A DNA stretch of 51,949 nt from Octopus bimaculoides (Eukaryota). Below are positions 22,478 through 50,071 of the stretch, piece by piece. Position 1 is the first letter of the stretch. Each line of letters starts with the position of its first letter. Below the pieces are notes generated by a model. That model was not told where the DNA came from, did no database searches, and saw only the letters and a program-made list of their open reading frames with translations. Position numbers and translations under genes: made by a program. The DNA lies in the NCBI RefSeq assembly GCF_001194135.2, contig NC_068994.1:31743649-31795597 (forward strand), written 5' to 3'.

Positions 22478-22846
22478 GCATGGATGTGCGGTAAGAAGCT
22501 TGCTTCCCAACCACATGATTCAAGGTTCAGTCCCACTGTGTGACACCTTGGGCAGGTGCCTTCTACTATAGCTTCGGGCCGACCAAAGCCTTGTGAGTAG
22601 ATTTGGTAGATGGAAACTGAAAGAAGCCAGTTGTGTGTATATATGTGTGTGTGTCTATATTTGTACCTCCCATCGCTGCCCGACAACTGGTGTTGGTGTG
22701 TTTACATCTCCATAATGTAGCGGTTCAGCAAAAGAGACTGATAGAATAAGTACTAGGATTAAAAAATAAGTCTTGGGTCAATTTCTTCGATTAAAATCCT
22801 TCAAGGCGGTGCCCCAGCATAGCTGCAGTCAAATGACTGAAACATA
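22478..22846 (+). mobile_element. CORE-like tRNA SINE
   Basis: Same head, core and tail as 11930-12302. Confidence 0.9.
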
Positions 22847-23324
22847 AAAATTTTTTTTTTTTTTTTAATTAAGAAAGAATTCTTAATAATATCTAATTAT
22901 AAAAACGTGATATGATTTTATTAAAGATCAAATGGCCATGAGNNNNNNNNNNNNNNNNNNNNNNNNNNNNNNNNNNNNNNNNNNNNNNNNNNNNNNNNNN
23001 NNNNNNNNNNNNNNNNNNNNNNNNNNNNNNNNNNNNNNNNNNNNNNNNNNNNNNNNNNNNNNNNNNNNNNNNNNNNNNNNNNNNNNNNNNNNNNNNNNNN
23101 NNNNNNNNNNNNNNNNNNNNNNNNNNNNNNNNNNNNNNNNNNNNNNNNNNNNNNNNNNNNNNNNNNNNNNNNNNNNNNNNNNNNNNNNNNNNNNNNNNNN
23201 NNNNNNNNNNNNNNNNNNNNNNNNNNNNNNNNNNNNNNNNNNNNNNNNNNNNNNNNNNNNNNNNNNNNNNNNNNNNNNNNNNNNNNNNNNNNNNNNNNNN
23301 NNNNNNNNNNNNNNNNNNNNNNNA

Positions 23325-23495
23325 CACACACACACACGTATACATATATACGATGGGCTTCTTTCAGTTTCCGTCTACCAAATCCACTCACAAGACTTTG
23401 GTCGGCCTGAGGCTATAGTAGAAGACACTTGCCCAAGGTGCCACGCAGTGGGACTGAACCCAGAATCATGTGGTTGGTAAGCAAGCTACTTGGCC
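23325..23495 (-). mobile_element. CORE-like tRNA SINE 5' half (rest in gap)
   Basis: gggcttctttcagtttccgtctaccaaatccactcacaag..gacacttgcccaaggtgccacgcagtgggactgaacc. Confidence 0.9.
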
Positions 23496-23678
23496 ATGAG
23501 CCTTTACAGTATGTTAGTTCATCAATTTAAAATGAATAATAAAATCAAACTTTTTTCTTTCTTTTCTTTATATCATGTTTGATTATTTGAAATCTATCTT
23601 TTCAGTTCTCTATTACACTCTGTTCTTGTGTCCAAGTAATTCGTTCAAGTGAAGTGTTAGTGATTTGAGCTTTCCTAC

Positions 23679-25385
23679 ATGGACAAGATGCAATCTGTCA
23701 AATCAATCCAATCTATGTGGAAACAGTTTACATTTTGTGGTAAAACCTACCATCGGAATGATCAGTGGAAGACAACCAACAATGGCAATGAAAATGATAA
23801 ACAGAAGAAAACGCAGCCTGCAGCCCAGCTGGGCAGTTTACTCCAAGAGATGCCTCAGCAACAACAACAACAACAACAGCAGCATCAGCAGCAACATCAA
23901 CATCATTCACACCATCCTCAACATAATCATTTATATTCTAATAATTACAACTATGCAAACAATAATAGCAACCTCAGCAACAACTCTCCTGGTGGTGGTG
24001 GTGGTGGGGGCAATGGTAGTAATAGTAGCAGTAGTAGTAGTATGATGAATGTAAATCATTCAGTGACTGTTACAGGTTCTAATCATGACAGTACCCTATC
24101 AACTGGTTCAATACGTGGCATGAATCCTGAAATCAAAGAATTCAGGTGCAATCTCTGCCCTAAAATATTCTCACAACAGACGGGTCTTCAAATTCACATG
24201 CGAGTCCATTTAGAAAAACCTTTGAAAGTTTCAACTAGTCCTAAGCATTATGGTCAAGACTCTGCCCAGAAAAACCATGAACATAGCCATTCCTCAGAGA
24301 AAACTTACCAATGTAATGTTTGCTTCAAGACATTTAATCAACAAGTGAACCTGCGTAACCATGAACGAACACATACGGGGGAAAGACCTTTTCAGTGTAA
24401 TGTTTGCATGAAATCATTTACCCAGCAAACCATACTTCATAACCACCAGCGTGTTCACTCAGGTGAGAAGCCCTTTAAGTGTATTATCTGTGAGAAATCA
24501 TTCAGTAACCAAACTATTTTAAAAAACCATGAACGTGTACATACTGGTGAACGACCATTTAAATGTAGCAATTGTCCAAAGGCATTCAGTAATCAAACCA
24601 TCTTAAAAAACCATGAACGTGTACACTCAGGAGAAAAACCTTTCCAGTGTTCTCTATGTCTGAAAGTTTTTAGTCAACAAACAAGTTTGAAAAACCATCA
24701 ACGCGTCCATACTGGCGAGAAGCCTTTCCAATGTGGTGTTTGCTTGAAATCTTTCAGTCATCAAACCATTCTTAAAAATCATGAACGAGTCCATTCTGGG
24801 GAGAAACCATATAAATGCTTAGTTTGTTCAAAGTCATTCAGTCATCAAACTATTCTAAAGAACCATGAACGTATCCATTCTGGGGAAAAGCCATTTCAGT
24901 GTAGTGTTTGCTTGAAGTCCTTCAATCAGCAAACTATCCTTCGAAACCATCAGAAAACACACACTGGGGCATTTCCATACAACTGCTCTTTCTGCACAAA
25001 GGTCTTCTCAGAAGAAGAGTATTTAAAAGACCATGAATATGTCCATCGAAAACATCAAGATATTAGAAATGATCTCCCTAGGGAGGATGAGGTGGGAAGC
25101 CCCACCCCACCATACACACCACCTGTTCAATCATCTTCCTCACCTCCTTTATCATCAAGGTCCTCTCCAATGCAACAGTCTACTCCATCAACCTCAGGTC
25201 CCTCCTCATCTCCTGTACCATTTTCTTCAGCGCCTATTCCACCAATGTGGCGACCTCCTGCATATCTGCAACCGATGCCACCGCAGTATTGGGAAAATGA
25301 TTATAATTGGTCTAGGGCTTTCTCTGTGTCAACATATTTAACACCTTGGACAAAGCGGTCATCAAACCGTGGGAAAACTCACTGA
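23679..25385 (+). CDS. ZNF-A: C2H2 zinc-finger protein, 568 aa; Q/H/N/G/S-rich N-terminus, 10 intact fingers plus 1 degenerate finger, P/S-rich C-terminus
   Basis: Uninterrupted ORF; CX2CX12HX3H repeats with TGEKP/SGEKP linkers at 24141-25046; candidate acceptor ttttcAG at 23604-23605; AATAAA at 25811-25816; no KRAB/SCAN/BTB/ZAD domain seen; start codon uncertain. Confidence 0.95.
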   Translation: MDKMQSVKSIQSMWKQFTFCGKTYHRNDQWKTTNNGNENDKQKKTQPAAQLGSLLQEMPQQQQQQQQQHQQQHQHHSHHPQHNHLYSNNYNYANNNSNLSNNSPGGGGGGGNGSNSSSSSSMMNVNHSVTVTGSNHDSTLSTGSIRGMNPEIKEFRCNLCPKIFSQQTGLQIHMRVHLEKPLKVSTSPKHYGQDSAQKNHEHSHSSEKTYQCNVCFKTFNQQVNLRNHERTHTGERPFQCNVCMKSFTQQTILHNHQRVHSGEKPFKCIICEKSFSNQTILKNHERVHTGERPFKCSNCPKAFSNQTILKNHERVHSGEKPFQCSLCLKVFSQQTSLKNHQRVHTGEKPFQCGVCLKSFSHQTILKNHERVHSGEKPYKCLVCSKSFSHQTILKNHERIHSGEKPFQCSVCLKSFNQQTILRNHQKTHTGAFPYNCSFCTKVFSEEEYLKDHEYVHRKHQDIRNDLPREDEVGSPTPPYTPPVQSSSSPPLSSRSSPMQQSTPSTSGPSSSPVPFSSAPIPPMWRPPAYLQPMPPQYWENDYNWSRAFSVSTYLTPWTKRSSNRGKTH

Positions 25386-25395
25386 AAGAACTTTG

Positions 25396-25770
25396 TCATC
25401 ATCATCATCATTGGCATCATTATCATCATCATCATCATCGATACCATCATCATCATTCCACATTTTAATGTCCACTTTTCCATGCTTGCGTGGGTTGGAT
25501 GGAGTTTATCGAGGTAGATTTTCTGTGGCCAGACATGTTCTCACAAAATACTGGAAACGAATGACAGTGACAGTCATTTTACAACTATCACATGATGTCA
25601 TAACAAGGAGACACAAACGCATATGCACACATACATATGTGTGAATGGTGGGTTTCTTTCAGTTTTCAAATACTAAATCAACTCACAAGGCTTTGCTCAG
25701 CCCATGGCTATAGTAAAAGACACTTGCCCAAGGTGTCATGCATTGGGACCGAACCCTGAATCATGTGATT
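25396..25770 (-). mobile_element. RTE-tailed SINE variant, antisense, in the predicted 3' UTR of ZNF-A
   Basis: (cat)n..ttaatgtccacttttccatgcttgc tail, then the shared CORE-like body gacacttgcccaaggtgtcatgcattgggaccgaacc. Confidence 0.8.
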
Positions 25771-25924: not shown

Positions 25925-26045
25925 TATTTGCTTTTCATCCTTTTGGGGTTGATAAATTAAGTACCAGTTGAACACTGGGGTTGATGTAATCGACACATCC
26001 CCTCCTGCAAAATGGCTAACCTTGTGGCAAAATTTGAAACCATTA
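25925..26045 (+). mobile_element. Nin/Deu-like SINE 3' half
   Basis: ttgcttttcatccttttggggttgataaattaagtaccagttgaacactgggg. Confidence 0.75.
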
Positions 26046-26687
26046 TTATTATTATTATTATCATTATTATAATTAGTATTGTAATTACTATTGTAATAGA
26101 GTGACAGATGAAATGCCTTGCTGTGTTTAGTTACATCTCTGTAGCTTCAAATACTGCAAAAAGTCAACTTTCACCCTCTCATTCTACAGACAACATATAG
26201 AATCCCTGATATAACCCTAACCCGTCTCAATACAATTGTGTGCTCTTGTACCAATGTAAAAATTGTAAAAGAAGGAAAAAAAAAAAGAAAAAAAATTTAC
26301 CATTTATAATGTTCCTCTTCCTCATCATCACTACCACTATTGTCATGATCATTTTCATCATCATCATTAAGTGTTCATCACTTATGGAAAATATATTTTT
26401 GTCTTGCAAAAGCTATACAACAAAACGAACATTTCCAGAGGTTATTTATTTACTGTGACCAGAAAGTTGTGAATTCTATATATTTGGCATTATGGTCTCT
26501 TTCTTTATCTCTCTGTCATATGTATGTGTGTATATGTGTGTGTGTGTGTGCAATTTCATTTTTTTAATTTAGAGTTAATTTTGACTGGCCACCCACTTGG
26601 TAGCAAGGTTGTGAAGGAGAGCATCTTGTTTTCTATCTATGTATGTATGTATGAGTGTGTGTGTGTATGAACGTATGTATGTATATA

Positions 26688-29899: not shown

Positions 29900-31700
29900 G
29901 CCTGTCAGCGTGCTGTGGACCAGTTTGACTTTTCCAAGTGTCCCTGACATCTGAACTTCCCCTGCTGAACTCTTGGACCTTTGATGTCTCCAATGCCACA
30001 AAGACATAAAACCAGCTGACATGGGTGGGGCCGTGGTGGTGTAGTGCATCGATCTCTACAAGGTAGAAGCTCTCTGCCAACTTCAACCCCACGCCCAGCT
30101 ACCAACAGACTGTGTCCTCCACTATCCATAACCTCATTGTCCGCACCCCCACAATTTGCTTCCTCCCCAAAATCCACAACCCTGGCTGCCCCATTGTCTC
30201 CACCTGCAACTGAACTCATCTCCAGATATCTTGACTGTGTCCTACCCCCCTAGTGGCTTCCCTCCCCTCTCACATCCATGACACCAACTATGCTCTTCGT
30301 TTGTTCAACTCTTTCTCCTTCCCTCCTGGCCCCTCTAAACTTCTCTTCACTCTTGACATCAAGAGTCTATACACAATGATCCCTCACCACAAGGGGCTGT
30401 GTGCACTCCAACATTTCTTTGACCTTCAATCCAACCCCCAACCTAACACATCCATACTGCTTTGTCTGGTCGAACTTGTCCTCTCACTTAACTGCTTCTT
30501 GTTTGTGGTTGATTTGTACCAGCAGATCTCTCGGGAGTGGCCATGGGAATGAGAATGGGCCCAACTATGCGAACCTGTTCGTTGGCTACATTGAGGCCCA
30601 AATATTCTCAAGTTTCACTGATTCCACTCTTGAACTATACAGTCGTTATACTGATGATTGTATCGGTGTGACCTCACTCTCCCGCGAACATCTAGACTCC
30701 TTCCTCTCTTTTGTCAAATCTTTCCATCCTGCCCTCCACTTCTCCTGCACTATTTTCCGACACCTCAGTCGCCTTTCTCGACATTTCGGTCAGCATTCAT
30801 CACTCCACTCGCACCACCTCCATCCACTACAAACACACAGACTCACACTCATACCTCCTCTTCCTCCTACCCTAAACACACCAAGCTCTCCATCCCCTAT
30901 TCTCAATTCCTCCGTCTACACAGGCTCTGCAGTGACAACCATGACTTTGAGACTCAGTCTCAACTCATGGCTCGCCACTTCATCCTNNNNNNNNNNNNNN
31001 NNNNNNNNNNNNNNNNNNNNNNNNNNNNNNNNNNNNNNNNNNNNCGCCACTATCCACACCGCCCTTGCCAGAGCATGTTCTGTGGACTGTGCATCTGCTC
31101 TCTCCCCCCACATCCGTCTCCCGTTTCCCCTCACATACCACCCCCACTAGCCTACCATTCTCCAAGCCTTCCGGCGACTCCAGTCTGACCCCTCCACTTT
31201 ATACATCTTCGCTAACCGACCCCTCCCCTCCTTCAAATGAGCCCACAATGTACAAGACCTCTTGGTCCACAGCTTCTTCCCTAACCCAACCTCCCAACCC
31301 GGCTCGCTCTCCTGCTCCTGTCCATACTGCCGCACTTGCTTACCTCTCCAACACCACCCTCCTCACAGGCCCCTATCATATCACTGACTCCTTCACCTGC
31401 ACTTCTGGCAACGTCATCTGCTGCATCTGTTCTCTCTGTCCTTCTCTATACATCAGTCAAATGGGATGCCGCTTGGCTGACCGGTTTGCGGAACACCTCC
31501 AAGACATCAGACTTGGCAATGACACCCTGGTCTCATGCCATTTCCGCTCTACTGGTCACTCTTTACAACACCTCTCTGTGATCAGATTGTCCTTGCACAG
31601 GGGCCATCTGGACTCCCGTCTTCGCCGTGAGCAGGGATTAATCTTCTTTCTTCTCTCCTTTGTGCCACATGGGCTCAACTCTCCTCCCCTCTTCATCTAA
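29900..31700 (+). mobile_element. Penelope-like element (RT plus GIY-YIG endonuclease), pseudogenised
   Basis: KPADMGGAVVV, LPKIHNPG, TLDIKSLYT, MGPNYANLF, YSRYTDD, IPYSQFLRLHRLCS, FTCTSGNVICCICSLCPSLYISQMGCRLADRFAEH (degenerate GIY-YIG), HGLN. Confidence 0.92.
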
Positions 31701-34305: not shown

Positions 34306-35785
34306 ATTGTGTAAATATACACACACACATACCTGTCTATGTTCATGAACACACACACACCCTACTCTTGGGCAACTTGTGGATCAATAAGTTGTTTCAT
34401 TTATTCATGTATTCTAAAATCCTCACTTTCAAATACCAAAGAATTTAGTTGTAGGACATCAAAGTCTTGTTATTAGTATTGTCTTTAGAAGGATAATAGG
34501 TTGTTATGCATTTGAAAGGAAATATTCTTAGTTAAGGTAGATCATTGGTGGAATTCTTTGAGCTTTGGAAAAACAATGCTTTGCAGTATTTGTTCTGACT
34601 CTTAATATTCAGAGTTCAAATCCTACTCAGTCAATTTCACCTTTCATTCTTTTGCAATTGATAAAACAAAGTGCCGGTCAAGTATTGACTGCAAAAGGGG
34701 GTTATTCTTTTGTTTCGGGGTTTCATATCCTAATGGTGATGGAATGAGGCTCATCCTTTTCCTTTTGTCATCAATAACATTAGTGTATCAGTGTTAGAAT
34801 GAAATCTAATATCAACTAAATCCAAAATCAGTACCAGTCATGAACTAGTGTCATTTTGATCAACTATGCCCTCACCTTTACAAATTTGCGACTGTTTGTA
34901 TTAGTGTAAGAAACCACTCATTTTGTAATCATTTTAAAAGTGCATACAATGCTATGAAATTAAGGTACTTGACTACCCATATATGATGGAACCCTGAACA
35001 AATAATGATTTGCCTGGCTGGTACAAGGTTTCAGCTTTCATCTCTAATCCACAATTTAGTGGCCTATTGAAAATGCTTTATTTGATTTCTTATGTTAACA
35101 AACACCATTCAGAAAAGGCATGAACGTTATTAATTCTTATTCCTCCCACCTCACTACACAAAGGTTTTTGAGAAAAAAAATCAGAGTCATCTATCAGTCA
35201 CCTATCTTCTCTCTAAATTTGCTGAATCATTTGAATGGAACTTTTGTTGCTTTGAATGACAAATATTTTATATTCAAAGCTAGTGTGTGGTGGTATGGTA
35301 TTCAAACTTTTCTACAACATCCAAACTTTCATATCAAGCACAGATTTGTAAATAAAAATGGGTGGCAACATTCTGCTGCATGTGGCATCAACATGGTGAC
35401 GGCACAGTCTCACAACTTAGAGGGAATGTTAATTGTCACTATCAGTACTTGCACCATGACCATCAACATTATTCTTCAGTATACTTTACCAAAGAATTTT
35501 TTTTTTTTTGTTCAAATGTTTCACTTTAACTCTGCTGAAAGACTTATTTATTCAATTATTTATTATTATATGAATTTTTTTGTCTCCTTGAAAACCTTAT
35601 AAACAACATCTGTAATCTATATACATTTTTTTTTATTTCTTTAAGTTTCTAAACCTACTGAAATATTCTAGTGTATTGATTGACATTTTTTGTTTCAACA
35701 AATAAAGTTTGTAAAGGTACTTAAAAAGATATGAATACCAATGTTTGTTTATTGTCTTTCCATGTTTGGTAGCTTCATTGTTAAT

Positions 35786-36962
35786 TATTTGGTCATCCCA
35801 AAAGTAATGTCCAAATTTTTGGTAAGAAAAAGTGATCTAATTTTACATTTTATTAAATTTTAACCCTGTGTATAATTCCCATCATTATCGATGACCTCTT
35901 TCCATTTACACATCAGTTTTTTAATTCCATTTGGTAAAAAATTCTTTTGGTTTTGATGAGAAGGAAGAGAGGACAGTTTTGACCTCTTTGGAGCTTTTGA
36001 GGACTATTTCATCTAAATGATTGTGTAAGCTTCAAAATAAATGGTAATCAGAAAGACCAAGGTCCAAGGAATAAGGCAGGTAAAGGATTTTTTTCTGATG
36101 TAATCTCTGCAGTGTGAGGCCTTGCATTATTATGATGAAACACCACTCCCTTATGATTCACCTAAGCAGGCCTTTTTTCTTCAAAGCAGCATCCAAATAC
36201 TCTGATTTTTGGCAATAGGTGTGAGCAGTAATTGTTGCATTAGTTGATAGCAGCTCAAAGTGGATGACTCCAATGCAATCCCACCAAATAGAACCTTTTT
36301 TGCATGGAGGTCCCTTTTGGGTTGTGGTTTAGCCTGTTCTTCATTGCCTGAATTGCTTGACATTTTCATAAAAAATTCATTTTTCATCACCAGTCACTAA
36401 TCTGTCCAAAAATGGTGAGATACAATCATGAAAGCAAAGAGATGAGCAGATATCTACTCATGATTTTCAGTTGGCTTCTATCAAATCATGGGGAACCCAT
36501 TTTCTGAGTTTGGGCACCTTTCCAAGCTGTTAAAGATAGTGGTGAATAGTTGAATGACTTGAATTAAGTTTGCTTGCCAATTCTTCAAATGATACAGCAA
36601 TATCCTTCTCAAGCTCTGACAAAAGAAGCTCATCCTCAAATTCAACAGATCATCCTATTCATTTTTGAACATTGCAAACCATCGTCTACAACTTTTTTCA
36701 TTCAAGCACTCTTCCTCATAAACAGAATGGATTTTTTGGGTTGCTTCTGCTGCACTGTTTGCCTTTTTGATCTCAAAGCATTATGTACCTTCGATATATC
36801 AGTCTTTGAGCGATTAATATTAGTAATTAATTCAGTCAAATTATTCTGTAAAAATAAATTAAATTAAAGGTTTCCAAGTTCATATCTGTATCAATCAATA
36901 CTGTTTGACATTTCAGAATGATGTAAAATTTGATGGAAATTACATATATTTCAAACATTATT
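35786..36962 (-). mobile_element. Decayed full-length mariner transposon
   Basis: WVPHDL (36482-36499), AKPQPKRDLHAKKVL, VVFHHNNARPH, PYSLDLGLSDYHLF, WKEVIDNDGNY; degenerate TIRs sharing gtaatNtcc. Confidence 0.85.
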
Positions 36963-36982
36963 TATGAGATGACCTGATACTT

Positions 36983-38070
36983 GTTCCAGTCATTGGACTG
37001 CAACCATGCTGGAGCAGAATCTTGAAGGGTTTACTCAAACAGATTAACCCAGAATTTGTTTATCTTTTTAAAGCCTAGTTCTTATTCTATCAGTCTCTTT
37101 TGTTCAACCAAGTTATGGGCAGGTAAACAAACCAACACCAGTTGTCAAGCAAAGGGGGAACACAAACACAGACATACATGCATATATATATATATACATG
37201 GGTGGCAGTGAAACATGGGCTGTGACTGCTGAGGACATGCGTAAGCTCGCAAGGAATGAAGCCAGTATGCTCCGCTGGATGTGTAATGTAAATGTGCATA
37301 CCTGTCAGAGTGTAAGTATCTTGAGAGAAAAGCTGAACATAAGAAGCATCAGTAGTGGTGTGCAAGAGAGACGATTGTGCTGGTTTGGACATGTGGTGAG
37401 AATGAATGAGGATAGCTGCGTGAAAAAGTGCCNNNNNNNNNNNNNNNNNNNNNNNNNNNNNNNNNNNNNNNNNNNNNNNNNNNNNNNNNNNNNNNNNNNN
37501 NNNNNNNNNNNNNNNNNNNNNNNNNNNNNNNNNNNNNNNNNNNNNNNNNNNNNNNNNNNNNNNNNNNNNNNNNNNNNNNNNNNNNNNNNNNNNNNNNNNN
37601 NNNNNNNNNNNNNNNNNNNNNNNNNNNNNNNNNNNNNNNNNNNNNNNNNNNNNNNNNNNNNNNNNNNNNNNNNNNNNNNNNNNNNNATAGGGTTTTCGAG
37701 CGAGATCGTTGCCAGTGCCCCTGGACTGGCTCTTGTACGGGTGGCACATAAAAGACACCATTTTGAGCGTGGCCGTTTTTGTGCGGGTGACACGTAAAAG
37801 CACCCACTACACTCTCTGAGTGGTTGGCGTTAGGAAGGGCATCCAGCTGTAGAAACTCTGCCAAATTCGATTGGAGCCTGGTGTTGCCATCTGGTTTCAC
37901 CAGTCCTCAGTCAAATCGTCCAACCCATGCTAGCATGGAAAGCGGACGTTAAACGATGATGATGATGTGTGTGATGGGCTTCTACACAGTTTCTGTCTAC
38001 CAAATTAACTCACTAAGTAGAAGACACTTTCCCAAGGTGCCATGCAGTGGGATTGAACCTGAAAGCTCAT
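36983..38070 (-). mobile_element. CORE-like SINE split by a young RTE insertion
   Basis: SINE 3' half at 36983-37196 and 5' half at 37967-38070 flank the RTE, split at the central microsatellite. Confidence 0.75.
37201..37966 (+). mobile_element. 5'-truncated young RTE LINE
   Basis: GSETWAVTAEDMRKLARNEASMLRWMC..RRLCWFGHVVRMNED (RTE C-terminus); 3' UTR and (GAT)n tail as at 1-199. Confidence 0.92.
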
Positions 38071-38289
38071 AGTTGTAAAGAGCAAATTGAATACAACATT
38101 ATCAGAAACTTGTAAATAACTGGGCACAATGTTTACTTGGTGATTTGTATCTTCAATGGTTTATAAATGGCTAATAAACATAATATAGTCTTGTCAATTT
38201 AACAACTCCCAAGTTCAAGTCAGTGTAGGAATCTCAAAGTCAGAGGCTCCCAACCTAGAATGCAAAAGGATTTCAGGGGTTGTAACAAA

Positions 38290-38972
38290 GAGATATAGTA
38301 TATTATCATCATCATCATTATGACCACTGCCATGCTTGCATGGATCAAATGGAATTTGTTGAGGCAAATTTTCTATGGCCAGATGACCTTCCTGTCACCA
38401 TCTCTTCCCTGCTTCCAAGCAAGGAAATATTTCCCCACAGTCAGACATGTTTTTCATGAAAGACTGGAAATGAACAATACTGCTTGTATGATGGTGATGC
38501 TTGTTTACAACTATCACATGAAGCACACACATTTTATTAAAACCACTCTTAAAAATAACTGTATTCTATTAAGTATACTAAGAACATTATTATTTTATAT
38601 AACTTCTAATTTTTATTTGTTTCAGTCATTGGACTGTGGCCATACTGGGGTACCATCTTGAAGAACATTTAGTTGAATGAATTAGCCCCAGTACTTTTTG
38701 TTTCTTTTTCTTTAAATTTGGCACTTATTCTATTGGTCTCTTTGCCAAACTGCTAAGTTACAGGGATGTAAACACTCCAACACTGGTTGTCAAGGGATGG
38801 GGTAGAAGTGGGGGCAGATACTGCTACAAAGACATGCACACACACACACACATATATGACAGGCTTCTTTCAATTGCTGTCTACTAAATCCACTCAGAGG
38901 GCTTTAGTTGACCCGAAGCTATAGTAGCATAGTAGACTGAACCCAAAACCATGTGGTTGGGAAGCAAGCTTC
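38290..38972 (-). mobile_element. Adjacent antisense SINEs: RTE-tailed variant (~38290-38530) and CORE-like copy (~38605-38972); a further copy lies at ~39975-40395
   Basis: Match to 25396-25620 and to 8016-8397 respectively. Confidence 0.75.
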
Positions 38973-40399
38973 TGTGTCCTCATTCCATGTGCAGCAACAT
39001 GTTTGTGTGAAACTTGATTCAGTTCTCTGGATTTGTCAGTTAAGACAAAATTTCAGAATCACCTGAATTCACTGACAGACTTGCAGTTCTTGATCAACAG
39101 GAAAGTTCTACGTTTTGATAAAATCATAAATGAGAAGCATCCAAATTAGTTTTGTGGAACCCACTTCTTGGTGATATAAGAAAGGTAAAACATCATCACA
39201 CTTACATCAACTTGATTGCTGACACTGGTCTAAAATGTATCCAGGACCTTGAGGTAGTGATGTTGGACTGAGAAGTGTTGTAGGTGGACTTTGTTGCTGT
39301 GGAACCCAGCCACAGAATAGAATAAATGAGAAGCAAGAACAAAGTTATTGCATTTGCTTACAATTTTTGATTGATTTCATGGTTTACAGTGCTTTCAAAT
39401 TGTGCAGTTTGCTTGTTTATTACTGAAAAGCTAGCATTTATACAATTTGTATACATGGTAATCCTTTCACATGGCCCAGTCCTTGTTTTGGTGTGGAGGT
39501 CCTTGTATCTCAATGGCTAGCAGAGCACAAGTTCCTTGTGTGGTCTCCCATGCCGGACAGGTCAAAAGATAGAGATCAAACTGACATGGACCACCTCTTT
39601 CCAGAGGTAAAAATTGGTTTGCATAGCACAGCAACCTAGGAAAATAAGTAAAGTTACAGAAGCATTAATGACAATTCAAAACCAACAAGACCTGCAAAAA
39701 GAAGGCCATCCTTTTTCAGGGAAACAGAGTCAGGGTACTGAGGCAAAGCTGAAAAAGCAGGGATCGAAGAGCAAGAAGAGAAGCAGAAAAGACATTCCAC
39801 AGTTGAGAATAGTAGGGAAAAGTTGTGGATGGTCCACAGAGAATAAAGGTCTTAAGTAAGTAAAATCTGGTATCAGCCATGTGTTTCTTTGCCTTTGTCA
39901 GTTTACATATTAAAGCCATGACATAACTTTCTCTTATATGTGTGTTACAAATATATGAATTTTCTCATATTTTTAATCTTTTATCTCTTATCTCTCAGTC
40001 ATTAAACTGTGGAGATGTTGGAACAGCACTTTGAAGGAGTTTTAGTCAGATGACCCCAGTACTTTTTTTTAAGCTTGATTCTTATTCTATCAGTCTTTTT
40101 TTGCCAAACTGATAAGTTACAGGGGTGTAAACAAACCAGTACTGGTTGTCAAGTGGTGGTGAGGGACAAACACAGGCACAAAGATACTCACACACACACG
40201 CATGCACACATGTATATTTACACACACACATATATATATGCCATACTTTCAGTTTCCATCTATAAAATCCTCTCATAAGACCTTGGTTAGCCTGAGGCTA
40301 TAGTAGAAGACACTTACTCAAATCCCACACAGTGAGACTGAACCCATAGTCTTGTGGTTGGGAAGGAAGCTTCTTACTACACAGCAACACCTGACCCTA

Positions 40400-40836
40400 T
40401 AGTGTACAAAATCACAGGATGTGCTAAAACACCTTTTGAGCATTGGGCCTCATGGAGGCAATGTGGCTGAGTTCCTTTCAAGTGTTGGGCCTCATGAAGG
40501 CAAAGTGACTGATTCCTTTTGAGTGTTGGGTCTCATGGAGACAATGATCGAGACCTTTGGCATTATGTCATGCTTGAGAAGAAGACCCATCAATCCAAGC
40601 AAAATCGCAGTCATGGCAGATACTGGTGTTATGCAAACTAGCATCAGTGCCAGTGGCATGTAAAAGTACCCATTACACTCTCGGAGTGGTTGGTGTTAGG
40701 AAGGGCATCCAGCCATAGAAAACCATGTCAAATCAGACTGAAGACTGATGCAGCCTTCCAGTGTGCCAGCCCAGTCAAACCGTCCAACCCATTCCAGCAT
40801 GGACAATGGATGTTAAATGATGATGATGATGATGAT
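40400..40836 (+). mobile_element. Older RTE-family 3' end containing a ~41 bp minisatellite (about 3 copies, 40432-40555)
   Basis: ccttttgagcattgggcctcatggaggcaa-type units, then gagtggttggtgttaggaagggcatccag..gttaaat(gat)n. Confidence 0.75.
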
Positions 40837-41320
40837 ATTTAGCAATATCTATATATATTCAGTAGTATCAGTGCCAAGCAGTGTTTAGGCATAAGCAAAC
40901 TTTAGGTTAGTTAAAATGTTTGTGACATATTTCAAATTCTAAAGACAAAATGCTCTCTTATGGTAAAAAGGTGTAAAAACACCATATCTGTCAAGTGCTG
41001 CACTCTGTTGAATTCCCAAATGTGTTTCTAGCTCTTTGGCCATTATGATTGGGAAATACCAAAGAGAGGTAACTCTAGACAGACTTAAAGCTGTAGTTTT
41101 AACTAAAACACAGTCAACAATATTGTTATAAAGGCTCTCTTCCAATAACGGAGAGCAGTTATTTCCATTCCTGCTATCCCTGAAATGCATGTGTATTAGA
41201 TAACCATCAAGTTATCTAATATCCAATGTGAAACTGATAGGTAAGATTGGCTGTAATGGATCTGTAATAGTGCATACTTTGGTTAATATATATATATATA
41301 TATAGAGAGAGAGGCATACC

Positions 41321-42100
41321 TACACACGTGTGCCCTCTCCATTCCCATAAGACTCTGTTTCCTCATAACTTTCAGAAAAATGGATACGTTTTTTAATGAA
41401 TTTTTCTACAAATACCTTTCAGATGGTGTAGATTACGATTGTAACTGAATTTAATGCTAAAAAATGATTGGTGAGTGTGCACACATATTAACACATATCA
41501 CATATATATCTACAAAATAAAACTTGAAAATTTGGAAAGAATATATGTGTCAGTGTGTATGTGTGCCCACCAATTTGTTTTTGTTCCTAACATTAAATTT
41601 CAATTTAATCGTAATCTGCACCACCTGAAAGAAATTGTAGAAAATTTCATTAAAAAAAATGCTCATTTTCTTGAAATTTATGAGGAAACAAAGTCAATTT
41701 GTGTGAATTATCTGAAACTCCACTCCCCACCTGAGGAAATTTTTTTTTTTCAAAACAAATTCTTATATAATTGTAATCAGCACCATCTGAAAGGTATCTG
41801 TAGAAAATTCTATTAAAAAATACCCAATTTTCTGAAAGTCATGAGGAAATAAATTCAATTCCCATGAATTATCTAAAACTCCTCTACCTAGCAACTGAAA
41901 AAGAAGTTTTCACAAATTTCGATGTAATTGTAATCTATACCACCTGAAATGTATTTGTAGAAGATTTCATTATCTCTGTTGGAATAAATAAACCAAAATA
42001 ATACAAAAAACAAAAATTACAAATCAAAAATAAATCATTCAAAAGTATCCATTTGTCTGAAAGTTATGAAGAAACAAAGTTGGGAGAGCACACCTGTGTA
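41321..42100. mobile_element. TA-bounded TIR element with internal ~165 bp repeats
   Basis: Ends tacacacgtgtgccctctcc / ggagagcacacctgtgta; one inverted unit (41345-41455) and three direct units (~41600, ~41768, ~41926). Confidence 0.75.
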
Positions 42101-42429
42101 AATATGCTTATGTGTCTGTACTTGGTTTCCACAAAGGTCTTTGGAACAACTTGAAATGAGGATCAGATCATAAAAGACAAAAAAAAAACAATGTTAAAAA
42201 GATAAAAATATCAAAAACAAAAATAGACAGTCGAGAGTGAATATAAAGGGAGTTAATTTGAAAGTTATCTTCTCTTCTTTCGACTCTGTCCAATGTTTAT
42301 GCTTTGTGGCTTTGTCTTATTTTTTTCAAGAAGAGAAAACAATGTAAAAACTCTTTGCCGAAAAACTGATTTCAGTTTTGATTTTTATCAGTGTCTGTAT
42401 GTAGGTAACTCTGTAATGCATTCGGAACG

Positions 42430-42486
42430 TATCGATATATTGCGTAAATAATTTTCCGAGTAAAAGAAAACTTGGTACAGGTAAGT
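42430..42486 (+). promoter_or_regulatory. Candidate promoter and non-coding first exon of ZNF-B
   Basis: TATCGATA (DRE consensus) at 42430-42437; consensus donor CAG|GTAAGT at 42480/42481; CpG-rich; candidate acceptor ccAG at 46344-46345, 11 nt before the ATG. Confidence 0.5.
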
Positions 42487-43262
42487 TTCACACAGTTTTT
42501 TGTTTTTTTCTTGTGTTTTTTGTTGTTGTCTAATCTTTGCTTTTCTTCAACAAATGTAACTTTTTAAGATCTTTTATTTTTGTTGCTCAACAAAATTTGC
42601 GATCGGTTTCAATTTTTGGTTGAGGTCTTTTGAGTTGATTTTCACTTTCACGTTTGCTACTCTTCATTAAGAAAAAATGCCATGAACGCCACAACATTGA
42701 TGCCTTCCTTGGGAATTCTGTACCTTTACGATATAAGTCACAAGCTAATTATAGACCTGTCCTTTTAGATTCATGTTCCTGGAAAACAAAATACATCATA
42801 TCAACCAACTCTAACGAAAGAGCCTCTGAATGGTCTCTCAGTTTGCTAGAAACAACGGTCAAATTTCCCAAGTCGCACCATACCATCTTTTAATAGGAAA
42901 CGTGACAGGATAATGTAGTCATGGTTGGTCATGGCTAGAATGCCTTTAATAATGTCTGTTCAATCAGAGCCGGGCTTTTGATGTGTACCGTACTGAATAA
43001 ACTTTCTGCAAACGCGATGCGAGGTCTAATGTCATTTGCAGGCTGCAGTGATTTCATTTTTTTTTTTGTTACTGTTGTATTTTGGAAAAAGAATGAATGT
43101 TACAACTCATCTCTTTCATCTTTATAAAATATATTCGGTCTTGTGTCTGAGAAACCAATCATCACGTGAAACAAATACCAACATTTTAAGATATTTTAAC
43201 ATTGTCTTTAAATTAAAACATTGCTTTATTTCTTAATTATCTAGAAAATGATAATTAATACG

Positions 43263-44830
43263 TCAGGGATGGCCATGCAGTTAAGAATCTCGCTTTGCAG
43301 CCACGTTGGTTTGGATTCTGTCCCACTGTGCGGCATCTTGGGCAATTGACTTCGAAAATAGGCCCGTGTCGACCAAGTCGGTCATGTTTGTGCTTATGTC
43401 ACTATTTGACAACCGGTGTCGTTTGTTTACGTCCCTGCAACTTAGTGGTTCAGCAAAAGACCAATAGAATAAGCACGATTTTCACTAAGAAAAAAAAAAA
43501 GAATTCGGAGTTTTTGCGTGGAATCAAGTACCCTGACCTCCTAATATGTTGCAAATCTCTTATTCTGGTTCGGAAAAAGGGTGGGGGGCGAAGGGGAGGA
43601 CCCCTCATCCCGGACCCATTGGAAAATGTTTTTTTTTTTTTTCGGTGAATGAATTCCTGTGACCTAATACACTACAAAACCCTTTTGGGGGTCCGAAAAG
43701 TGGGGTGGGGTGAGGTGGAAGTCTCGGAAATTTAACCCCCACCCCCATTGATCTTTTCACCCGCATGATTTTCACTAAGGAAAAAAAATAAAAATAAAAA
43801 TCGCGCCCAAACTAATTTTTGTGTGTGGGCGGGGGAGAAAGATGATAAATAAGTATTATTTACATTATTTACATTCAACGGATATTTGTCCTCATCTTGT
43901 TTGTTGTTAACACAACGTTTCGGCTGGTNNNNNNNNNNNNNNNNNNNNNNNNNNNNNNNNNNNNNNNNNNNNNNNNNNNNNNNNNNNNNNNNNNNNNNNN
44001 NNNNNNNNNNNNNNNNNNNNNNNNNNNNNNNNNNNNNNNNNNNNNNNNNNNNNNNNNNNNNNNNNNNNNNNNNNNNNNNNNNNNNNNNNNNNNNNNNNNN
44101 NNNNNNNNNNNNNNNNNNNNNNNNNNNNNNNNNNNNNNNNNNNNNNNNNNNNNNNNNNNNNNNNNNNNNNNNNNNNNNNNNNNNNNNNNNNNNNNNNNNN
44201 NNNNNNNNNNNNNNNNNNNNNNNNNNNNNNNNNNNNNNNNNNNNNNNNNNNNNNNNNNNNNNNNNNNNNNNNNNNNNNNNNNNNNNNNNNNNNNNNNNNN
44301 NNNNNNNNNNNNNNNNNNNNNNNNNNNNNNNNNNNNNNNNNNNNNNNNNNNNNNNNNNNNNNNNNNNNNNNNNNNNNNNNNNNNNNNNNNNNNNNNNNNN
44401 NNNNNNNNNNNNNNNNNNNNNNNNNNNNNNNNNNNNNNNNNNNNNNNNNNNNNNNNNNNNNNNNNNNNNNNNNNNNNNNNNNNNNNNNNNNNNNTATATA
44501 TATATATATATATATTCTGATGATAAAATATAGTATCTTTCAAAAACATCCTAAATGTTTAAGAAAAAAAAACCCATTTTACAGAAATAAATTTTCCAGA
44601 GTGTGAATTACATGGTTCGTTATTAAATATATCCCCTTCGCTCCCCCCCTTTCCTGAACCAAAATAAGGGATTTGCAGCATATTAAGTCAGGGTACTTGA
44701 TTTCACGCAAAAAATCCAAGTTTTTTTTCTTAGTGAAAATCGTGTGGGTGTTAATATAAAAATTTACCTTGATTTGTTTAACTAACCCTTTCTTGGTGGC
44801 GCCCCAGCATAGCTGACACACCAAAAGATA
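43263..44830 (+). mobile_element. CORE-like SINE split by a TIR element
   Basis: SINE runs 43263-43473 (..ccaatagaataag) and resumes after 44744 (..ggtggcgccccagcatagctg). Confidence 0.65.
43474..44744. mobile_element. Unclassified DNA element with ~130-150 bp TIRs spanning a gap
   Basis: cacgattttcactaagaaaaaa..tttttgcgtggaatcaagtaccctgac.. is mirrored at 44600-44744; third partial terminus at ~43764; no TSD found. Confidence 0.7.
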
Positions 44831-45288
44831 AGAGAATCTCGTAATAAATTAGGTAGCTTTGGTATTTTCTTTTAAGCTGTATAGTTTATAAGAACACTTT
44901 CCAACTGTGTTTAGTGGTTCATTTCCACCATCAGGCAAGTGTCTTGTAAGATATCCACAGGTCAACTAAATCCTTGTTGGTGGAATTTGAACCTGTATGC
45001 AAGCCTGTTGGCTGAACCATCCAGTTCTTAGTTGGGTAGACTTAGATTGGTGTCACTTTAGTGTGCGATCTACGTGACCATTTACATTTTAGCATGCAAT
45101 TTAACCATAACTCTTACTCTAAACCAGTGGTTCTCAACCAATTTGTGCTTATGGACTCCTTTGATATTCTATTCTGGTGGCCATCTCATAGCCATTCGAT
45201 GTTTAAAGACTAGTTTTATAGATACTTCTTTAGATGTTATAGATTGTGGTGTCATCTCATGAGACTCTCAGAAGCTCACGAACAGTGA

Positions 45289-45694
45289 TGTAGGAACCAG
45301 AGCAGTGTGTTGGTGCTGTGTAGACGTTGGCGACATTGGTGAGAGACATCTGGTGTGGCAACGAAGATGGAGTTCGCTGCAAGGTAGTCAGTGGTTAGAC
45401 CTTAGAAAGTCTAGAACCAACTGACTCTGAGCCTAAGAAGAGGTGAGCTTTTATAGCTGACAGGTAGGCTCAAATGCTTGTTTGGAACAGACTGTCTCAC
45501 ATGACTTATTTGCAGGTTGTGATTGGTTGGGTTGCATATTGGCGCATGATAGAGTATGAGACAAATTGTGCCAATATCAACCAATTGGAGTGGTAGACAC
45601 AATGGGGTCCAAAACAGCGCCCAAAGGCTAGCTGTTACCTGTTACATTCGTATGTACTTGATATAAGAGAGGAAGCTCACTAGAGTTCACTACA
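45289..45694 (-). mobile_element. Probable solo LTR (406 bp) inside a hAT-like fragment starting cagtggttctcaacc at ~45125
   Basis: TGTAG...CTACA termini; TATAAAAG on - strand (45448-45455); several CCAAT; no TSD. Confidence 0.5.
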
Positions 45695-46356
45695 CTTCTT
45701 TCAAAATTCCTATTTTGTTATTCACACATTAACTTGTGTAGGTTGAACTATATGAAATGTTAGAGAATGAAACCTAGCTGTTTCTTGCAATATATTTAAA
45801 TTAAAACTTTTCATGGACCCTTAAAACCCTATAGTGGATCCCCAATTTACTATTTTGCAAGCATGGTGGGCTTTCATTCAGTTTCTGTCCAAATACACTC
45901 ACAGTTCACTGAAAAATTGGCTCCCCAGCATGGTTGCAATTCACTAAATTGAACCCAATAAAAAAAAAAGTAAAATAAAATAAAAAGAAATAATTTTCAT
46001 CATTTTTACATCTGTTTTACCATCCTGGCTGCATGGGATAGGGTCACTTTCAACAGTGTCTCTTCACTTATTGCAGTCCATCATCATCTCCTTTGTGATG
46101 TTCAGTATACTGCGATCAGCTCTTACCACTTCTCATGTCTTCTTTGGTTCTCTCTCTTCTGCAAGCTCCTTATGCTTGCATGGTTTGACACTCTTTTTTT
46201 CCTCAATAATCATTCTGTTATTTAATTTATTTAATCTAAAACCTTTTATTTTTTTTTATTCAACAGATATGGTGGAGAGAAGCACATTCAGAAAATAAAG
46301 TCACAAACAACGCAAAGGCAACCTTTTTTGACATTGACAATCCAGTTACTGCTAGG

Positions 46357-47070
46357 ATGGACACAGACTATTATAATATTTCAAACCCACCTGATGATGT
46401 TATAGATATTAGTAATGATGATGAAGTGGAGGAGGAGGAAGAGCCTATTTATAACATCAGTGAAAAGGAGAAAAATAACAGGCAGTCTTCCTTGCATGCA
46501 AACTCTAAACAGACTGAACAGAAAACAAAATCGAAATGGAAATCCACACCTCTCTGTTTGTTCCACTGTGAGTTCTGTGACCAACAGTTTCTGGACAGTG
46601 AATTTCTTGCACTTCATCAAAGGCGTCACCATCCCGTTTCCCAGGTGACCCAAAATGCTGGGGACAGTCCTACAAACCAGGTTGAGATTAAAATTGATGA
46701 CAGCAGCAGTGAGAGTGAGGTGAATGAAGGTGAGCTCTACCACTGTGAAGTTTGTGGCAAGCTGTTTACAGATGCCAGTCTGGTGCAGCAGCATCGCCGG
46801 GCTCATTACGGCGTCAAAGTATTCCAGTGTGATGTTTGCAGCAAAAGCTTTTCTGAGAGGAGTCATCTGTCACGCCACAAACGCACCCACACAGGAGAGA
46901 GACCATTTGGCTGTGATATATGTGGCAAGTATTTTGCTCGCTCAGACAAACTCCTCAGACACAAACGAATACACACGGGAGAGAAACCATATCACTGTGA
47001 AATATGTGGTAAAGTGTTTGGGAGATCCGATAAACTGTTACAACATAAACGAACACATTTCTACTGCTAA
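46357..47070 (+). CDS. ZNF-B: C2H2 zinc-finger protein, 237 aa; acidic N-terminus, 1 isolated plus 4 tandem fingers
   Basis: Intact ORF; fingers CEFC..HQRRH, CEVC..HRRAH, CDVC..HKRTH, CDIC..HKRIH, CEIC..HKRTH with TGERP/TGEKP linkers. Confidence 0.93.
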   Translation: MDTDYYNISNPPDDVIDISNDDEVEEEEEPIYNISEKEKNNRQSSLHANSKQTEQKTKSKWKSTPLCLFHCEFCDQQFLDSEFLALHQRRHHPVSQVTQNAGDSPTNQVEIKIDDSSSESEVNEGELYHCEVCGKLFTDASLVQQHRRAHYGVKVFQCDVCSKSFSERSHLSRHKRTHTGERPFGCDICGKYFARSDKLLRHKRIHTGEKPYHCEICGKVFGRSDKLLQHKRTHFYC

Positions 47071-47750
47071 GAGAGGTGATTGAGACTGTAGAGCATCAGA
47101 CTAGATATTTTAAAGTGTTTAGTTTTGTCTCGCTGCAATCTAAGATCAAATTCTATCAAAGTTCATATACACAATTATATTTTATACTTTACAGCAAAGG
47201 TGGGGACCTTTCTAGTAGCAAAGGTGAATTACAAGTACATACGAACCTGCTGAGAGCAGATATGTCCTCAGAAAAATAATGAAGCTTTATTTTATGCATG
47301 CAATCACACTAAGTAACATTAATTAAATTGCAATAATGTATTAATTAACCAGTGATAATGATTTAAATCCTATAAAACCAGTGTATAATGTTTATGGTTT
47401 AATGAAGTTTCTTGCCTTTCATTATGATGAAAAATTTAGTTCTGTTTATTATTGGAAATATCAAGGCAGCTAGATGTGACAATTCTTAAACTTGTATGCA
47501 AGATTACTGAAAGTCTTGCAGCAAGTGGTGCTTGGCTAAATTTGAGAAAAACTGTTTATGTCAATAAGTGTAGGAAAAAGATGCAACTTACAATTAGGGA
47601 TTTTAATTAAAAGTGAATATTTTTCAGTATCTATACAAGATTTATATTGGGTTATCAGATAAATTCATTCACTTTTTTTTTTCTATTTATTTAAATTATT
47701 TTCTTTCATCAACGATTTTAACAAATCAGTCAATAGTATATTTGCCTTCA

Positions 47751-48850
47751 GGTGCAATAAACACTGTAAACAAACAGGAAACAACTTCTATCTCATTCCA
47801 GGGAGAAAAACTAGAGGTAGTTAATAGCTTCCGCTATCTGGGTGACCAAGTTAGTAGTGGGGGTGGGTGCGCTGAAAGTGTAACTACTAGAATAAGAATA
47901 GCCTGGGCCAAGTTTAGAGAGCTCTTACCTCTGCTGGCGACAAAGGGACTCTCACTCAGAGTAAAAGGCAAACTGTATGACGCATGTGTACGAACAGCCA
48001 TGCTACATGGCAGTGAAACATGGGCTGTGACTGCTGAGGACATGCGTAAGCTCGCAAGGAATGAATCCAGTATGCTCCGCTGGATGTNNNNNNNNNNNNN
48101 NNNNNNNNNNNNNNNNNNNNNNNNNNNNNNNNNNNNNNNNNNNNNNNNNNNNNNNNNNNNNNNNNNNNNNNNNNNNNNNNNNNNNNNNNNNNNNNNNNNN
48201 NNNNNNNNNNNNNNNNNNNNNNNNNNNNNNNNNNNNNNNNNNNNNNNNNNNNNNNNNNNNNNNNNNNNNNNNNNNNNNNNNNNNNNNNNNNNNNNNNNNN
48301 NNNNNNNNNNNNNNNNNNNNNNNNNNNNNNNNNNNNNNNNNNNNNNNNNNNNNNNNNNNNNNNNNNNNNNNNNNNNNNNNNNNNNNNNNNNNNNNNNNNN
48401 NNNNNNNNNNNNNNNNNNNNNNNNNNNNNNNNNNNNNNNNNNNNNNNNNNNNNNNNNNNNNNNNNNNNNNNNNNNNNNNNNNNNNNNNNNNNNNNNNNNN
48501 NNNNNNNNNNNNGCACATAAGATGTACCATCCTGAGCGTGACCGTTGCCAGTACCGCCTGACTGGCCTTGTAGGGTTTTCGAGCGAGATCGTTGCCAGTG
48601 CCCCTGGACTGGCTCTTGTGCGGGTGGCACATAAAAGACACCATTTCGAGCGTGGCTGTTTTCGTGCGGGTGACACGTAAAAGCACCCACTACACTCTCT
48701 GAGTGGTTGGCGTTAGGAAGGGCATCCAGCTGTAGAAACTCTGCCAAATTAGATTGGAGCCTGGTGTAGCCATCCGGTTGCACCAGTCCTCAGTCAAATC
48801 GTCCAACCCATGCTAGCATGGAAAGCGGACGTTAAACGATGATGATGATG
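47751..48850 (+). mobile_element. 5'-truncated young RTE LINE
   Basis: LEVVNSFRYLGDQVSSGGG..RIRIAWAKFRELLPLL..LYDACVRTAMLHGSETWA; 3' UTR and (GAT)n tail; coding part still open. Confidence 0.93.
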
Positions 48851-49790: not shown

Positions 49791-50071
49791 AAAGGGGTAA
49801 AATTTATTCAAATTTCAAAAATGGTAAAAGCTATAGAGGAAGAAGAGCTACAAAAATAGAAACCTTAAAACACTTTGATAAAAATGTTTCCGTGTTAATT
49901 GAAATAACATTGGAAAGAAACAAATGAATTTATCTAACAGCCCAGTAAATTTCCCAAATAGATAATCAATTAAATTTAGGTATGAAAGTATTTATTGTTA
50001 TACTTGGGGATGGTCATATTTTGCCAATTAAACACACACTGTACATTTGGCCTTCACTTCAGCTTTATTAC

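Follow-up and report, generated by a model that had tools for sequence, protein, structure and literature searches.

A homotypic C2H2 zinc finger array with conserved helices in Octopus bimaculoides, a candidate reader of A/T-rich repeat DNA

We analysed a 51,949-nucleotide stretch of the Octopus bimaculoides genome (contig NC_068994.1, positions 31,743,649 to 31,795,597 of the forward strand; hereafter the window, in whose numbering all positions are given unless stated otherwise). Our subject is ZNF-A, a single unbroken open reading frame (ORF) at 23679..25385 on the + strand, comprising 568 codons plus a TGA stop and encoding ten C2H2 zinc fingers. Seven consecutive central fingers present nearly the same DNA-contacting helix, free of Arg and Lys at the base-contact positions, and this helix has stayed almost invariant while the synonymous sites of the finger units diverged to saturation. 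As the best explanation we tentatively propose that ZNF-A is a functional Krüppel-type protein with an ancient array, that its helices are under selection, and that it may read A/T-rich DNA with a 3-bp period, the latter being a prediction from its contact residues.

Ten classical fingers and a decayed eleventh unit

A regular-expression scan of the ORF identified ten C-X2-C-X12-H-X3-H fingers (F1–F10), which fill 24141..25046 exactly. This is where an earlier interpretation made from the letters alone (the sequence-only reading) had placed them, and its list of residues at helix positions -1, 1, 2, 3 and 6 (QQTGI, QQVNN, QQTIN, NQTIN, NQTIN, QQTSN, HQTIN, HQTIN, QQTIN, EEEYD) is identical to ours. 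The units fit the pattern [FY]-x-C-x2-C-x3-F-x5-L-x2-H-x3-H in 10/10 cases, which defines them as Krüppel-type C2H2 fingers, and all 40 zinc ligands are retained in a frame that is intact in a genome of 37% GC. Read from F1 to F10, the helices are QQTGLQI, QQVNLRN, QQTILHN, NQTILKN, NQTILKN, QQTSLKN, HQTILKN, HQTILKN, QQTILRN and EEEYLKD. Six fingers (F3, F4, F5, F7, F8 and F9) have Q-T-I-L-x-N in common, and Arg or Lys is found at -1, 2, 3 and 6 in 0/10 fingers, Arg being seen at +5 of F2 and F9 only; the shared motif and the Arg-free contacts had both been noticed before. Within F3–F9, Asn(+6) and Thr(+2) are each present in 7/7 fingers and Ile(+3) in 6/7 (Ser once), and position -1 is occupied by Gln, Asn or His, in the order Q, N, N, Q, H, H, Q. 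The Q-type fingers F3, F6 and F9 additionally have Gln in common at b2 and +8. The array is organized as follows:

24141..24209, + strand: finger 1, helix QQTGLQI, followed by the four-residue linker LEKP (regular-expression scan)
24222..24290, + strand: zinc-less pseudo-finger LKVSTSPKHYGQDSAQKNHEHSH, in register with the 28-amino-acid unit
24306..24374, + strand: finger 2, helix QQVNLRN, with which the run of nine fingers on canonical five-residue linkers begins
24390..24962, + strand: core array F3–F9, helices [Q/N/H]-Q-T-[I/S]-L-[K/H/R]-N, linkers [ST]GE[KR]P
24978..25046, + strand: finger 10, helix EEEYLKD, acidic and divergent, after a TGAFP linker

The linkers that connect F2 to F10 (TGERP, SGEKP, TGERP, SGEKP, TGEKP, SGEKP, SGEKP and TGAFP) are of the canonical TGEKP type. 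The Lys preceding the conserved Phe is invariant in 10/10 fingers, and Arg or Lys is present at +9 in F1–F9. Searches with Pfam models returned 117 bits for PF00096 (zf-C2H2; cut-off 25.2) and 217.8 bits for PF13465 (zf-H2C2_2; cut-off 40). PF12171 (zf-C2H2_jaz, 33.5 bits) and PF12874 (zf-met, 35.2 bits) also scored above their cut-offs, at residues that are covered by the far stronger classical matches; they are cross-matches of classical fingers, and the fingers of ZNF-A are not of the double-stranded RNA (dsRNA) type. The closest solved structures are the DNA-bound arrays of Zfp568, Aart, CTCF and PRDM9, all of which match via the framework only. Judged by its residues, the framework of the fingers is that of canonical DNA binders. 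A single-sequence AlphaFold2 model, in which the fingers were rendered as strands (mean predicted local distance difference test score 45), was unusable.

The sequence-only reading was right about the ten fingers and missed an eleventh, decayed one, which accounts for the 32 residues between F1 and F2 that look like a long linker. In this pseudo-finger, LKVSTSPKHYGQDSAQKNHEHSH, both Cys are replaced (V, S) and the core Leu(+4) is changed to Gln, whereas Gln(-1), Lys5, Asn6, His7, Glu8 and His11 are retained. The linkers LEKP and SSEKT on either side preserve the 28-residue period. Compared with the consensus of F3–F9, the pseudo-finger is identical at 8/23 amino acids and 49% of nucleotides, as opposed to 17-21/23 amino acids for F3–F9 themselves. 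Since the unit lies in register, the array appears to have begun as eleven units of one type, and the pseudo-finger can be read as an internal control for relaxed constraint within ZNF-A, in which loss of the ligands was presumably followed by drift.

Helix uniformity is maintained by long-term selection

The sequence-only reading had attributed the uniform helices to selection rather than to recent duplication, and three lines of evidence agree with it: the synonymous divergence between fingers, the distribution of variability within them, and the decay of the pseudo-finger. Pairwise Nei-Gojobori comparison of the 84-nt units of F2–F9 gave a mean proportion of synonymous differences (pS) of 0.86, which is saturated, and a mean proportion of nonsynonymous differences (pN) of 0.21; pN/pS between fingers is about 0.25, and dS was not computable for most pairs owing to saturation. 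Even the identical helices of F4/F5 and F7/F8 differ by 3 and 4 synonymous changes within the helix, respectively. Tandem Repeats Finder (TRF) reports an 84-bp period with only 69% matches. A 3-finger (252-bp) super-repeat at the DNA level, which we also considered, was unsupported by pairwise nucleotide identities or TRF.

Variability within F3–F9 is distributed unevenly, the mean column entropy being 0.54 bits for the four specificity positions, 0.55 bits for the helix surface and 1.40 bits for the non-ligand positions of the hairpin. Positions +1, +2, +4 and +6 are invariant and +3 is the same in 6/7 fingers. The helix is thus less variable than the hairpin, which is the reverse of the usual C2H2 pattern: contact residues normally are among the most variable positions of C2H2 fingers, octopus included (PMC10547256), whereas in ZNF-A they are the least variable. 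To put a number on this uniformity, we calculated the mean pairwise identity at positions -1, 2, 3 and 6 for the best seven consecutive fingers of a protein. ZNF-A reaches 0.74 and thereby exceeds all of 120 other poly-zinc finger proteins (poly-ZNFs; mean 0.34, SD (standard deviation) 0.095, maximum 0.61), a comparison set that was chosen for similarity to ZNF-A and is hence biased towards it.

Gene conversion would have homogenised the synonymous sites as well, yet these are saturated, which argues for purifying selection acting on the helix over a long period. On the same grounds we reject recent duplication or conversion between fingers as the source of helix uniformity, and consider selection on the helix well supported. 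There is one local exception: F4 (24519..24541) and F5 (24603..24625) are identical over a 23-nt tract, TTAAAAAACCATGAACGTGTACA, that covers the C-terminal half of the helix, and differ at many synonymous sites outside it. This tract may represent a small gene-conversion event.

The earlier statement that the helix codons differ is correct for Thr (ACC/ACT/ACA), Ile (ATA/ATT/ATC) and Leu (CTT/TTA/TTG/CTA) and does not extend to the two remaining shared residues. Gln(+1) is encoded by CAA in 8/8 of F2–F9, where the remaining Gln codons are mostly CAG, and Asn(+6) is AAC in six of F3–F9. Codon bias, constraint at the nucleotide level or avoidance of RNA editing are possible reasons for this invariance.

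The contact residues predict an A/T-rich periodic target

A structural review (PMC12264921) assigns adenine to Asn and Gln and guanine to Arg, Lys and His; at A:T-rich sites, as in SALL4 and Zfp568, the methyl groups of thymine are contacted through van der Waals forces by small or hydrophobic side chains, among them Ile, Thr and Ser. Residues of this A:T-reading kind, i.e. small or hydrophobic ones together with Asn or Gln at the contacts, are found throughout F3–F9. We built a naive contact code for target prediction from the same rules. Under this code, Asn(+6), Ile(+3) and Gln or Asn(-1) specify 5'-ATA-3' for most fingers, which is a frame of (AAT)n; the His(-1) fingers F7 and F8 yield 5'-ATG-3', a frame of (GAT)n, and F2 yields AAA. 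When all 64 uniform triplets were scored, ATA came out at 18.1 of a possible 20.5, followed by AAA (15.6), AGA and ACA (14.6) and ATG (13.5). The sequence-only reading had named both (AAT)n and (GAT/ATC)n as candidates: the former ranks top, whereas the latter fits F7 and F8 only. Going by these residues, (AAT)n-like A/T-rich periodic DNA is more likely to be the target than (GAT)n. The ordered -1 pattern also hints that the target may have a 9-bp (3-finger) super-period.

When the window was scanned with the composite site, (AAT)n microsatellites again came out on top, the best match being located at 26047..26070, 660 bp 3' of the stop codon, within the following feature:

26042..26092, no strand assigned: (AAT/ATT)n microsatellite with the best naive contact-code match in the window (TRF, site scan; illustrative only)

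Sites reaching 80% of the maximum score number 13 in the window as compared to 0.06 in first-order Markov simulations. The scan is illustrative only: high-scoring tracts exist in the window, and no evidence of binding follows from it.

These observations can be combined into a tentative scenario. Long ago, one finger unit would have been amplified to eleven, of which one has since lost its zinc ligands while the outer units drifted. Purifying selection would have kept the DNA-contacting face (x-Q-T-I-L-K-N) of the seven central fingers near invariant. Most likely, ZNF-A docks into the major groove of double-stranded DNA in the canonical mode, with ~3 bp per finger, and, given contacts by Asn at +6, Ile at +3, Thr at +2 and Gln, Asn or His at -1, most likely prefers A/T-rich DNA with a 3-bp period, namely ATA-like triplets as in (AAT)n-type tracts, with ATG/ATT-type triplets under the two His fingers. 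A unique, complex motif is probably not its target. The Gln-rich N-terminus and the Ser/Pro-rich tail may supply the effector function, and a role at microsatellites or transposon tails is conceivable.

A bolder version, which we consider unlikely, is that ZNF-A is a natural homotypic array, the evolved equivalent of engineered poly-triplet binders, whose seven to eight identical helices read long (AAT)n/(ATG)n-type tracts in register, including the tails of the dominant SINE (short interspersed nuclear element) and RTE families of the octopus. It would thereby gauge repeat length and, with no KRAB-like system, mark microsatellites or the 3' ends of transposons across the genome. The sequence-only reading had spoken of a KRAB-independent sensor. 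Pfam indeed detects no KRAB domain; the label is nevertheless uninformative, as ZNF-A has no known effector domain of any kind.

Several points weigh against ZNF-A as a reader of periodic A/T-rich DNA. The contact code gives weak guidance on Ile(+3), Thr(+2) and His(-1); the last may favour G, or a 3' T, for which engineered ANN modules employ it. Position -1 is not uniform, so that only two bases of each predicted triplet recur periodically. Engineered long arrays required extended linkers after every second finger (PMC5013590); ZNF-A has no extended linkers, which makes it uncertain that all eight fingers engage at once. Furthermore, an ortholog or paralog of ZNF-A was not found in the protein collections searched (see below).

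Alternative explanations

ZNF-A might instead be an ordinary transcription factor in which three to five fingers read a non-repetitive A/T-rich motif and the other fingers provide non-specific affinity, serve as spacers or remain idle, the uniformity then reflecting ancestry plus general constraint. Long natural arrays often use subsets of their fingers, with F4-F6 of TFIIIA and F8 of CTCF acting as spacers (PMC12264921), and several features of ZNF-A would suit such a protein: its linkers are all canonical and none is extended, the ordered variation at -1 (Q-NN-Q-HH-Q) hints at a non-uniform site, and the helices of the end fingers F1, F2 and F10 differ from the rest. However, unused fingers should have drifted during the time it took to saturate the synonymous sites, which is at odds with the invariance of +1, +2, +4 and +6 and the near-invariance of +3, and we rate this possibility as somewhat unlikely. 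It is distinctly unlikely that the uniform, polar and Arg-free surface serves to bind a periodic RNA, a protein partner or another polymer rather than double-stranded DNA. The lack of Arg and Lys at the base-contact positions and the zf-C2H2_jaz and zf-met scores above the Pfam cut-offs could be taken in this sense, and C2H2 fingers are able to mediate protein-protein contacts (PMC12774644). On the other hand, the jaz and met matches share their residues with the much stronger zf-C2H2 and zf-H2C2_2 matches, the phosphate-contacting Lys before Phe and Arg(+9) are conserved, and the five-residue TGEKP-type linkers are associated with DNA-bound arrays. Fingers that bind dsRNA, by comparison, have long inter-finger linkers.

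Even if DNA is the ligand, the relevant repeat could be another one, ZNF-A acting as a sensor of the (GAT)n tails of abundant octopus SINE/RTE elements that reads triplets in the ATG/GAT frame and labels the 3' ends of transposons. No other trinucleotide repeat is as common in the window as (ATC/GAT)n (12 runs), which forms the tails of the SINE/RTE family, one of which directly follows the ZNF-A stop codon; moreover, His as a guanine contact leads to 5'-ATG-3' for F7 and F8, and the repeat targets of expanded cephalopod ZNFs are an open question (PMC12513265). Yet Gln or Asn, which read adenine rather than guanine, occupy -1 in 6/8 of F2–F9, ATG as a uniform triplet (13.5) falls behind ATA, AAA, AGA and ACA, and five of the seven core fingers have no Arg, Lys or Asp for the G:C pair. 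In a genome this dense in repeats, chance alone can account for one neighbouring SINE tail. All in all, a (GAT)n sensor seems quite improbable. Still less credible, and in our view very improbable indeed, is the notion that ZNF-A has no function, or is a very young ORF specific to its lineage, and that its helix uniformity is functionally meaningless. It would be in line with the embedding of the gene among SINEs and with the lack of an ortholog, paralog or identical entry in the searched protein collections, which do include O. sinensis and O. vulgaris proteins. But a 568-codon frame with every zinc ligand intact is very unlikely without selection, pN/pS between fingers is about 0.25 at saturated pS, the ligand-less unit has decayed and its neighbours have not, and a young array could not have fingers that diverged so long ago.

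Comparison with known systems

The expansion of C2H2 genes in cephalopods was reportedly described by Albertin in 2015. In a survey of this expansion, Holzinger et al. 2025 (PMC12513265) named the search for repeat-derived binding sites as the next step, the targets of the roughly 1,800 expanded genes being an open question. ZNF-A is like the genes of this expansion with respect to its tandem fingers, its TGEKP-type linkers, the lack of KRAB, SCAN and BTB domains and its repeat-rich region near a second zinc finger gene, ZNF-B. It is unlike other members in that no paralog with its helix type was found with a helix probe that was run together with a control (see below). We regard ZNF-A as a genuine, if somewhat unusual, member of the C2H2 expansion in cephalopods and as a candidate A/T-rich repeat reader; its homotypic, anciently conserved helix set is uncommon. 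As the contact surface essentially is one repeated helix, the predicted target is a short periodic sequence, and ZNF-A provides an unusually simple test case. If the prediction is true, ZNF-A would be a natural instance of the design rule of synthetic repeat-binding fingers and would give the first target class for a cephalopod ZNF; if it fails, strongly conserved uniform helices can serve purposes other than the reading of periodic DNA.

In SALL4 ZF6-7 and Zfp568 ZF5-6, Ile, Val, Thr or Ser together with Asn are found at the base contacts, similar to ZNF-A, although the likeness concerns the type of residue only. These proteins use one or two special fingers within heterogeneous arrays for a short aperiodic AATA-type motif, whereas ZNF-A presents the same helix seven times. 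Among solved structures, Zfp568 also matches ZNF-A best, via the framework only, and there is no homology at the level of the helices. Natural ZNFs that act on simple repeats include Zscan4, which binds (CA)n (PMC7083622), and CLAMP, which binds (GA)n (PMC4945028). Both are C2H2 arrays with microsatellite-type targets, like the target class predicted for ZNF-A, but they bind dinucleotide repeats and are unrelated proteins from other phyla, and binding by ZNF-A is a prediction. To our knowledge, no homogeneous helix set has been reported for Zscan4 or CLAMP. In general searches, which included no direct comparison with CLAMP, Zscan4 or the GAGA factor (GAF), a further binder of simple repeats, homology of ZNF-A to SALL4/Zfp568, Zscan4, CLAMP and the engineered arrays described next stopped at the finger fold.

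The engineered proteins ZF11xHunt/ZF-KOX1 carry the helix QRATLQR in up to 11 fingers and bind poly(CAG), with a preference for longer repeats (PMC5013590). ZNF-A follows the same logic of one repeated helix; the engineered arrays differ from it in that they are synthetic, address GC-rich triplets and depend on the extended linkers mentioned above, which ZNF-A does not have. Plant C2H2 proteins of the QALGGH (EPF/ZPT2) type have one invariant helix motif in all of their fingers, each of which reads the same short core. They are plant-specific, contain two to four fingers separated by long variable spacers, and their helix sequence is unlike that of ZNF-A.

Search for relatives

A homolog search with the whole protein retrieved generic vertebrate poly-ZNFs with 40-52% identity via the framework only and no cephalopod match. 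F10 together with the C-terminal tail gave 44 word candidates, none of them at E ≤ 0.001, and a synthetic 66-amino-acid probe of six concatenated ZNF-A helices gave 146 word candidates, none at E ≤ 10. In a control for the helix probe at that database size, ZNF-A itself obtained E = 9e-5 and a two-finger fragment E = 1, while 0/120 generic ZNFs scored, so that the null result does carry weight where a protein has about three such helices or more. An exhaustive HMMER search with the N-terminal 154 amino acids against 1.84 billion representatives yielded three weak poly-Gln/low-complexity hits, which were dismissed on inspection, and no homolog. The exact ZNF-A sequence is absent from a collection of 15 billion proteins, though it is recorded as a called gene in the genome index.

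The searched collections include proteins of O. sinensis and O. vulgaris, and orthologs of ZNF-B from both species fall into the same 90% cluster. At the DNA level, O. sinensis CM016872.1:341021-361746 is collinear with 34700..51200 of the window at ~88-91% nucleotide identity, interrupted by lineage-specific repeat insertions; this block corresponds to a 10-kb flank around ZNF-B, ends ~9 kb short of the ZNF-A position and indicates a neutral divergence between O. bimaculoides and O. sinensis of roughly 0.1. Identity in the non-coding DNA surrounding ZNF-B is about 90%. Because the array is old, an ortholog of ZNF-A should exist, and it is most likely owing to annotation that it is missing from the protein sets.

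Gene model

The 568-amino-acid product of ZNF-A is listed as a called gene on chromosome CM046614.1 (GCA_001194135.2), around 31.76 Mb. A stop codon is present in frame 6 codons 5' of the ATG. Further upstream, a polypyrimidine tract followed by CAG resembles a splice acceptor; if the latter, at ~23605, is real, the whole coding sequence lies in one exon and one or more 5'-UTR (untranslated region) exons are situated upstream. From this arrangement, the coding sequence is probably confined to one exon. The gene comprises the following parts in addition to the finger array:

23588..23605, + strand: putative splice acceptor (polypyrimidine tract, then CAG), read from the sequence
23679..25385, + strand: ZNF-A coding sequence (ORF list, direct sequence reading, called gene on CM046614.1)
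23679..24140, + strand: N-terminal 154 amino acids, mostly of low complexity (poly-Gln/His, Asn-rich, Gly7, Ser-rich; Pfam, HMMER)
25047..25382, + strand: C-terminal tail of 112 amino acids, Ser/Pro-rich (Pfam; search with F10 plus tail)

A Pfam scan of the whole protein (E ≤ 0.01) returned zinc finger families alone, with no KRAB, SCAN, BTB or ZAD domain. For the C-terminal tail, Pfam found no domain and the word-indexed search with F10 plus tail no homolog. Amino acids 16-30 in the N-terminal region (23724..23768), FTFCGKTYHRNDQW, resemble the second half of a C2H2 beta-hairpin (C-G-K-x-[FY]) and may be the relic of a finger.

Repeat context and neighbouring elements

Perfect runs of at least 4 units are found in the window 12 times for (ATC/GAT)n and 3 times for (AAT)n. 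One (ATC/TCA)n tract on the + strand, 25396..25456, is the tail of a SINE-like element in antisense orientation:

25396..25560, - strand: SINE-like element with (GAT)n tail (TRF and repeat comparison)

The tail begins 10-11 nt past the ZNF-A stop codon, as the sequence-only reading had noted (11 nt). Given that the region is repeat-dense, this adjacency is without evidential weight. The element has its tail and a roughly 45-bp tail-proximal end in common with the SINE/RTE-tail family of the window, five copies of which with (GAT)n ends are located at 1-205, 6445-6640, 37770-37975, 40640-40845 and 48660-48860. An ORF-like translation, MKPDGNTRLQSNLAEFLQLDALPNAN, recurs in five copies of this family, and longer copies at 37090..37900 and 47613..48783 are broken by N gaps.

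Just upstream of the ZNF-A exon, a tRNA-derived-looking SINE is present in two inverted copies, at 22478..22640 on the + strand and ~23340..23500 on the - strand. The pair brackets an assembly gap (22943..23323), and the true upstream sequence, with any promoter and 5' exon it may contain, is partly absent from the assembly. ZNF-B, named 'zinc finger protein 572-like' in the sources, lies 21 kb downstream (46357..47070, + strand) and encodes 237 amino acids with five C2H2 fingers, whose ordinary, Arg-rich helices include ERSHLSR, RSDKLLR and RSDKLLQ. Between the two genes, at 30401..31700 on the + strand, a retroelement-like fragment contains overlapping ORFs with the reverse-transcriptase-like motif YTDDCIGV and a Cys/His-rich segment downstream; it is broken by frameshifts and an N gap and is possibly Penelope-like.

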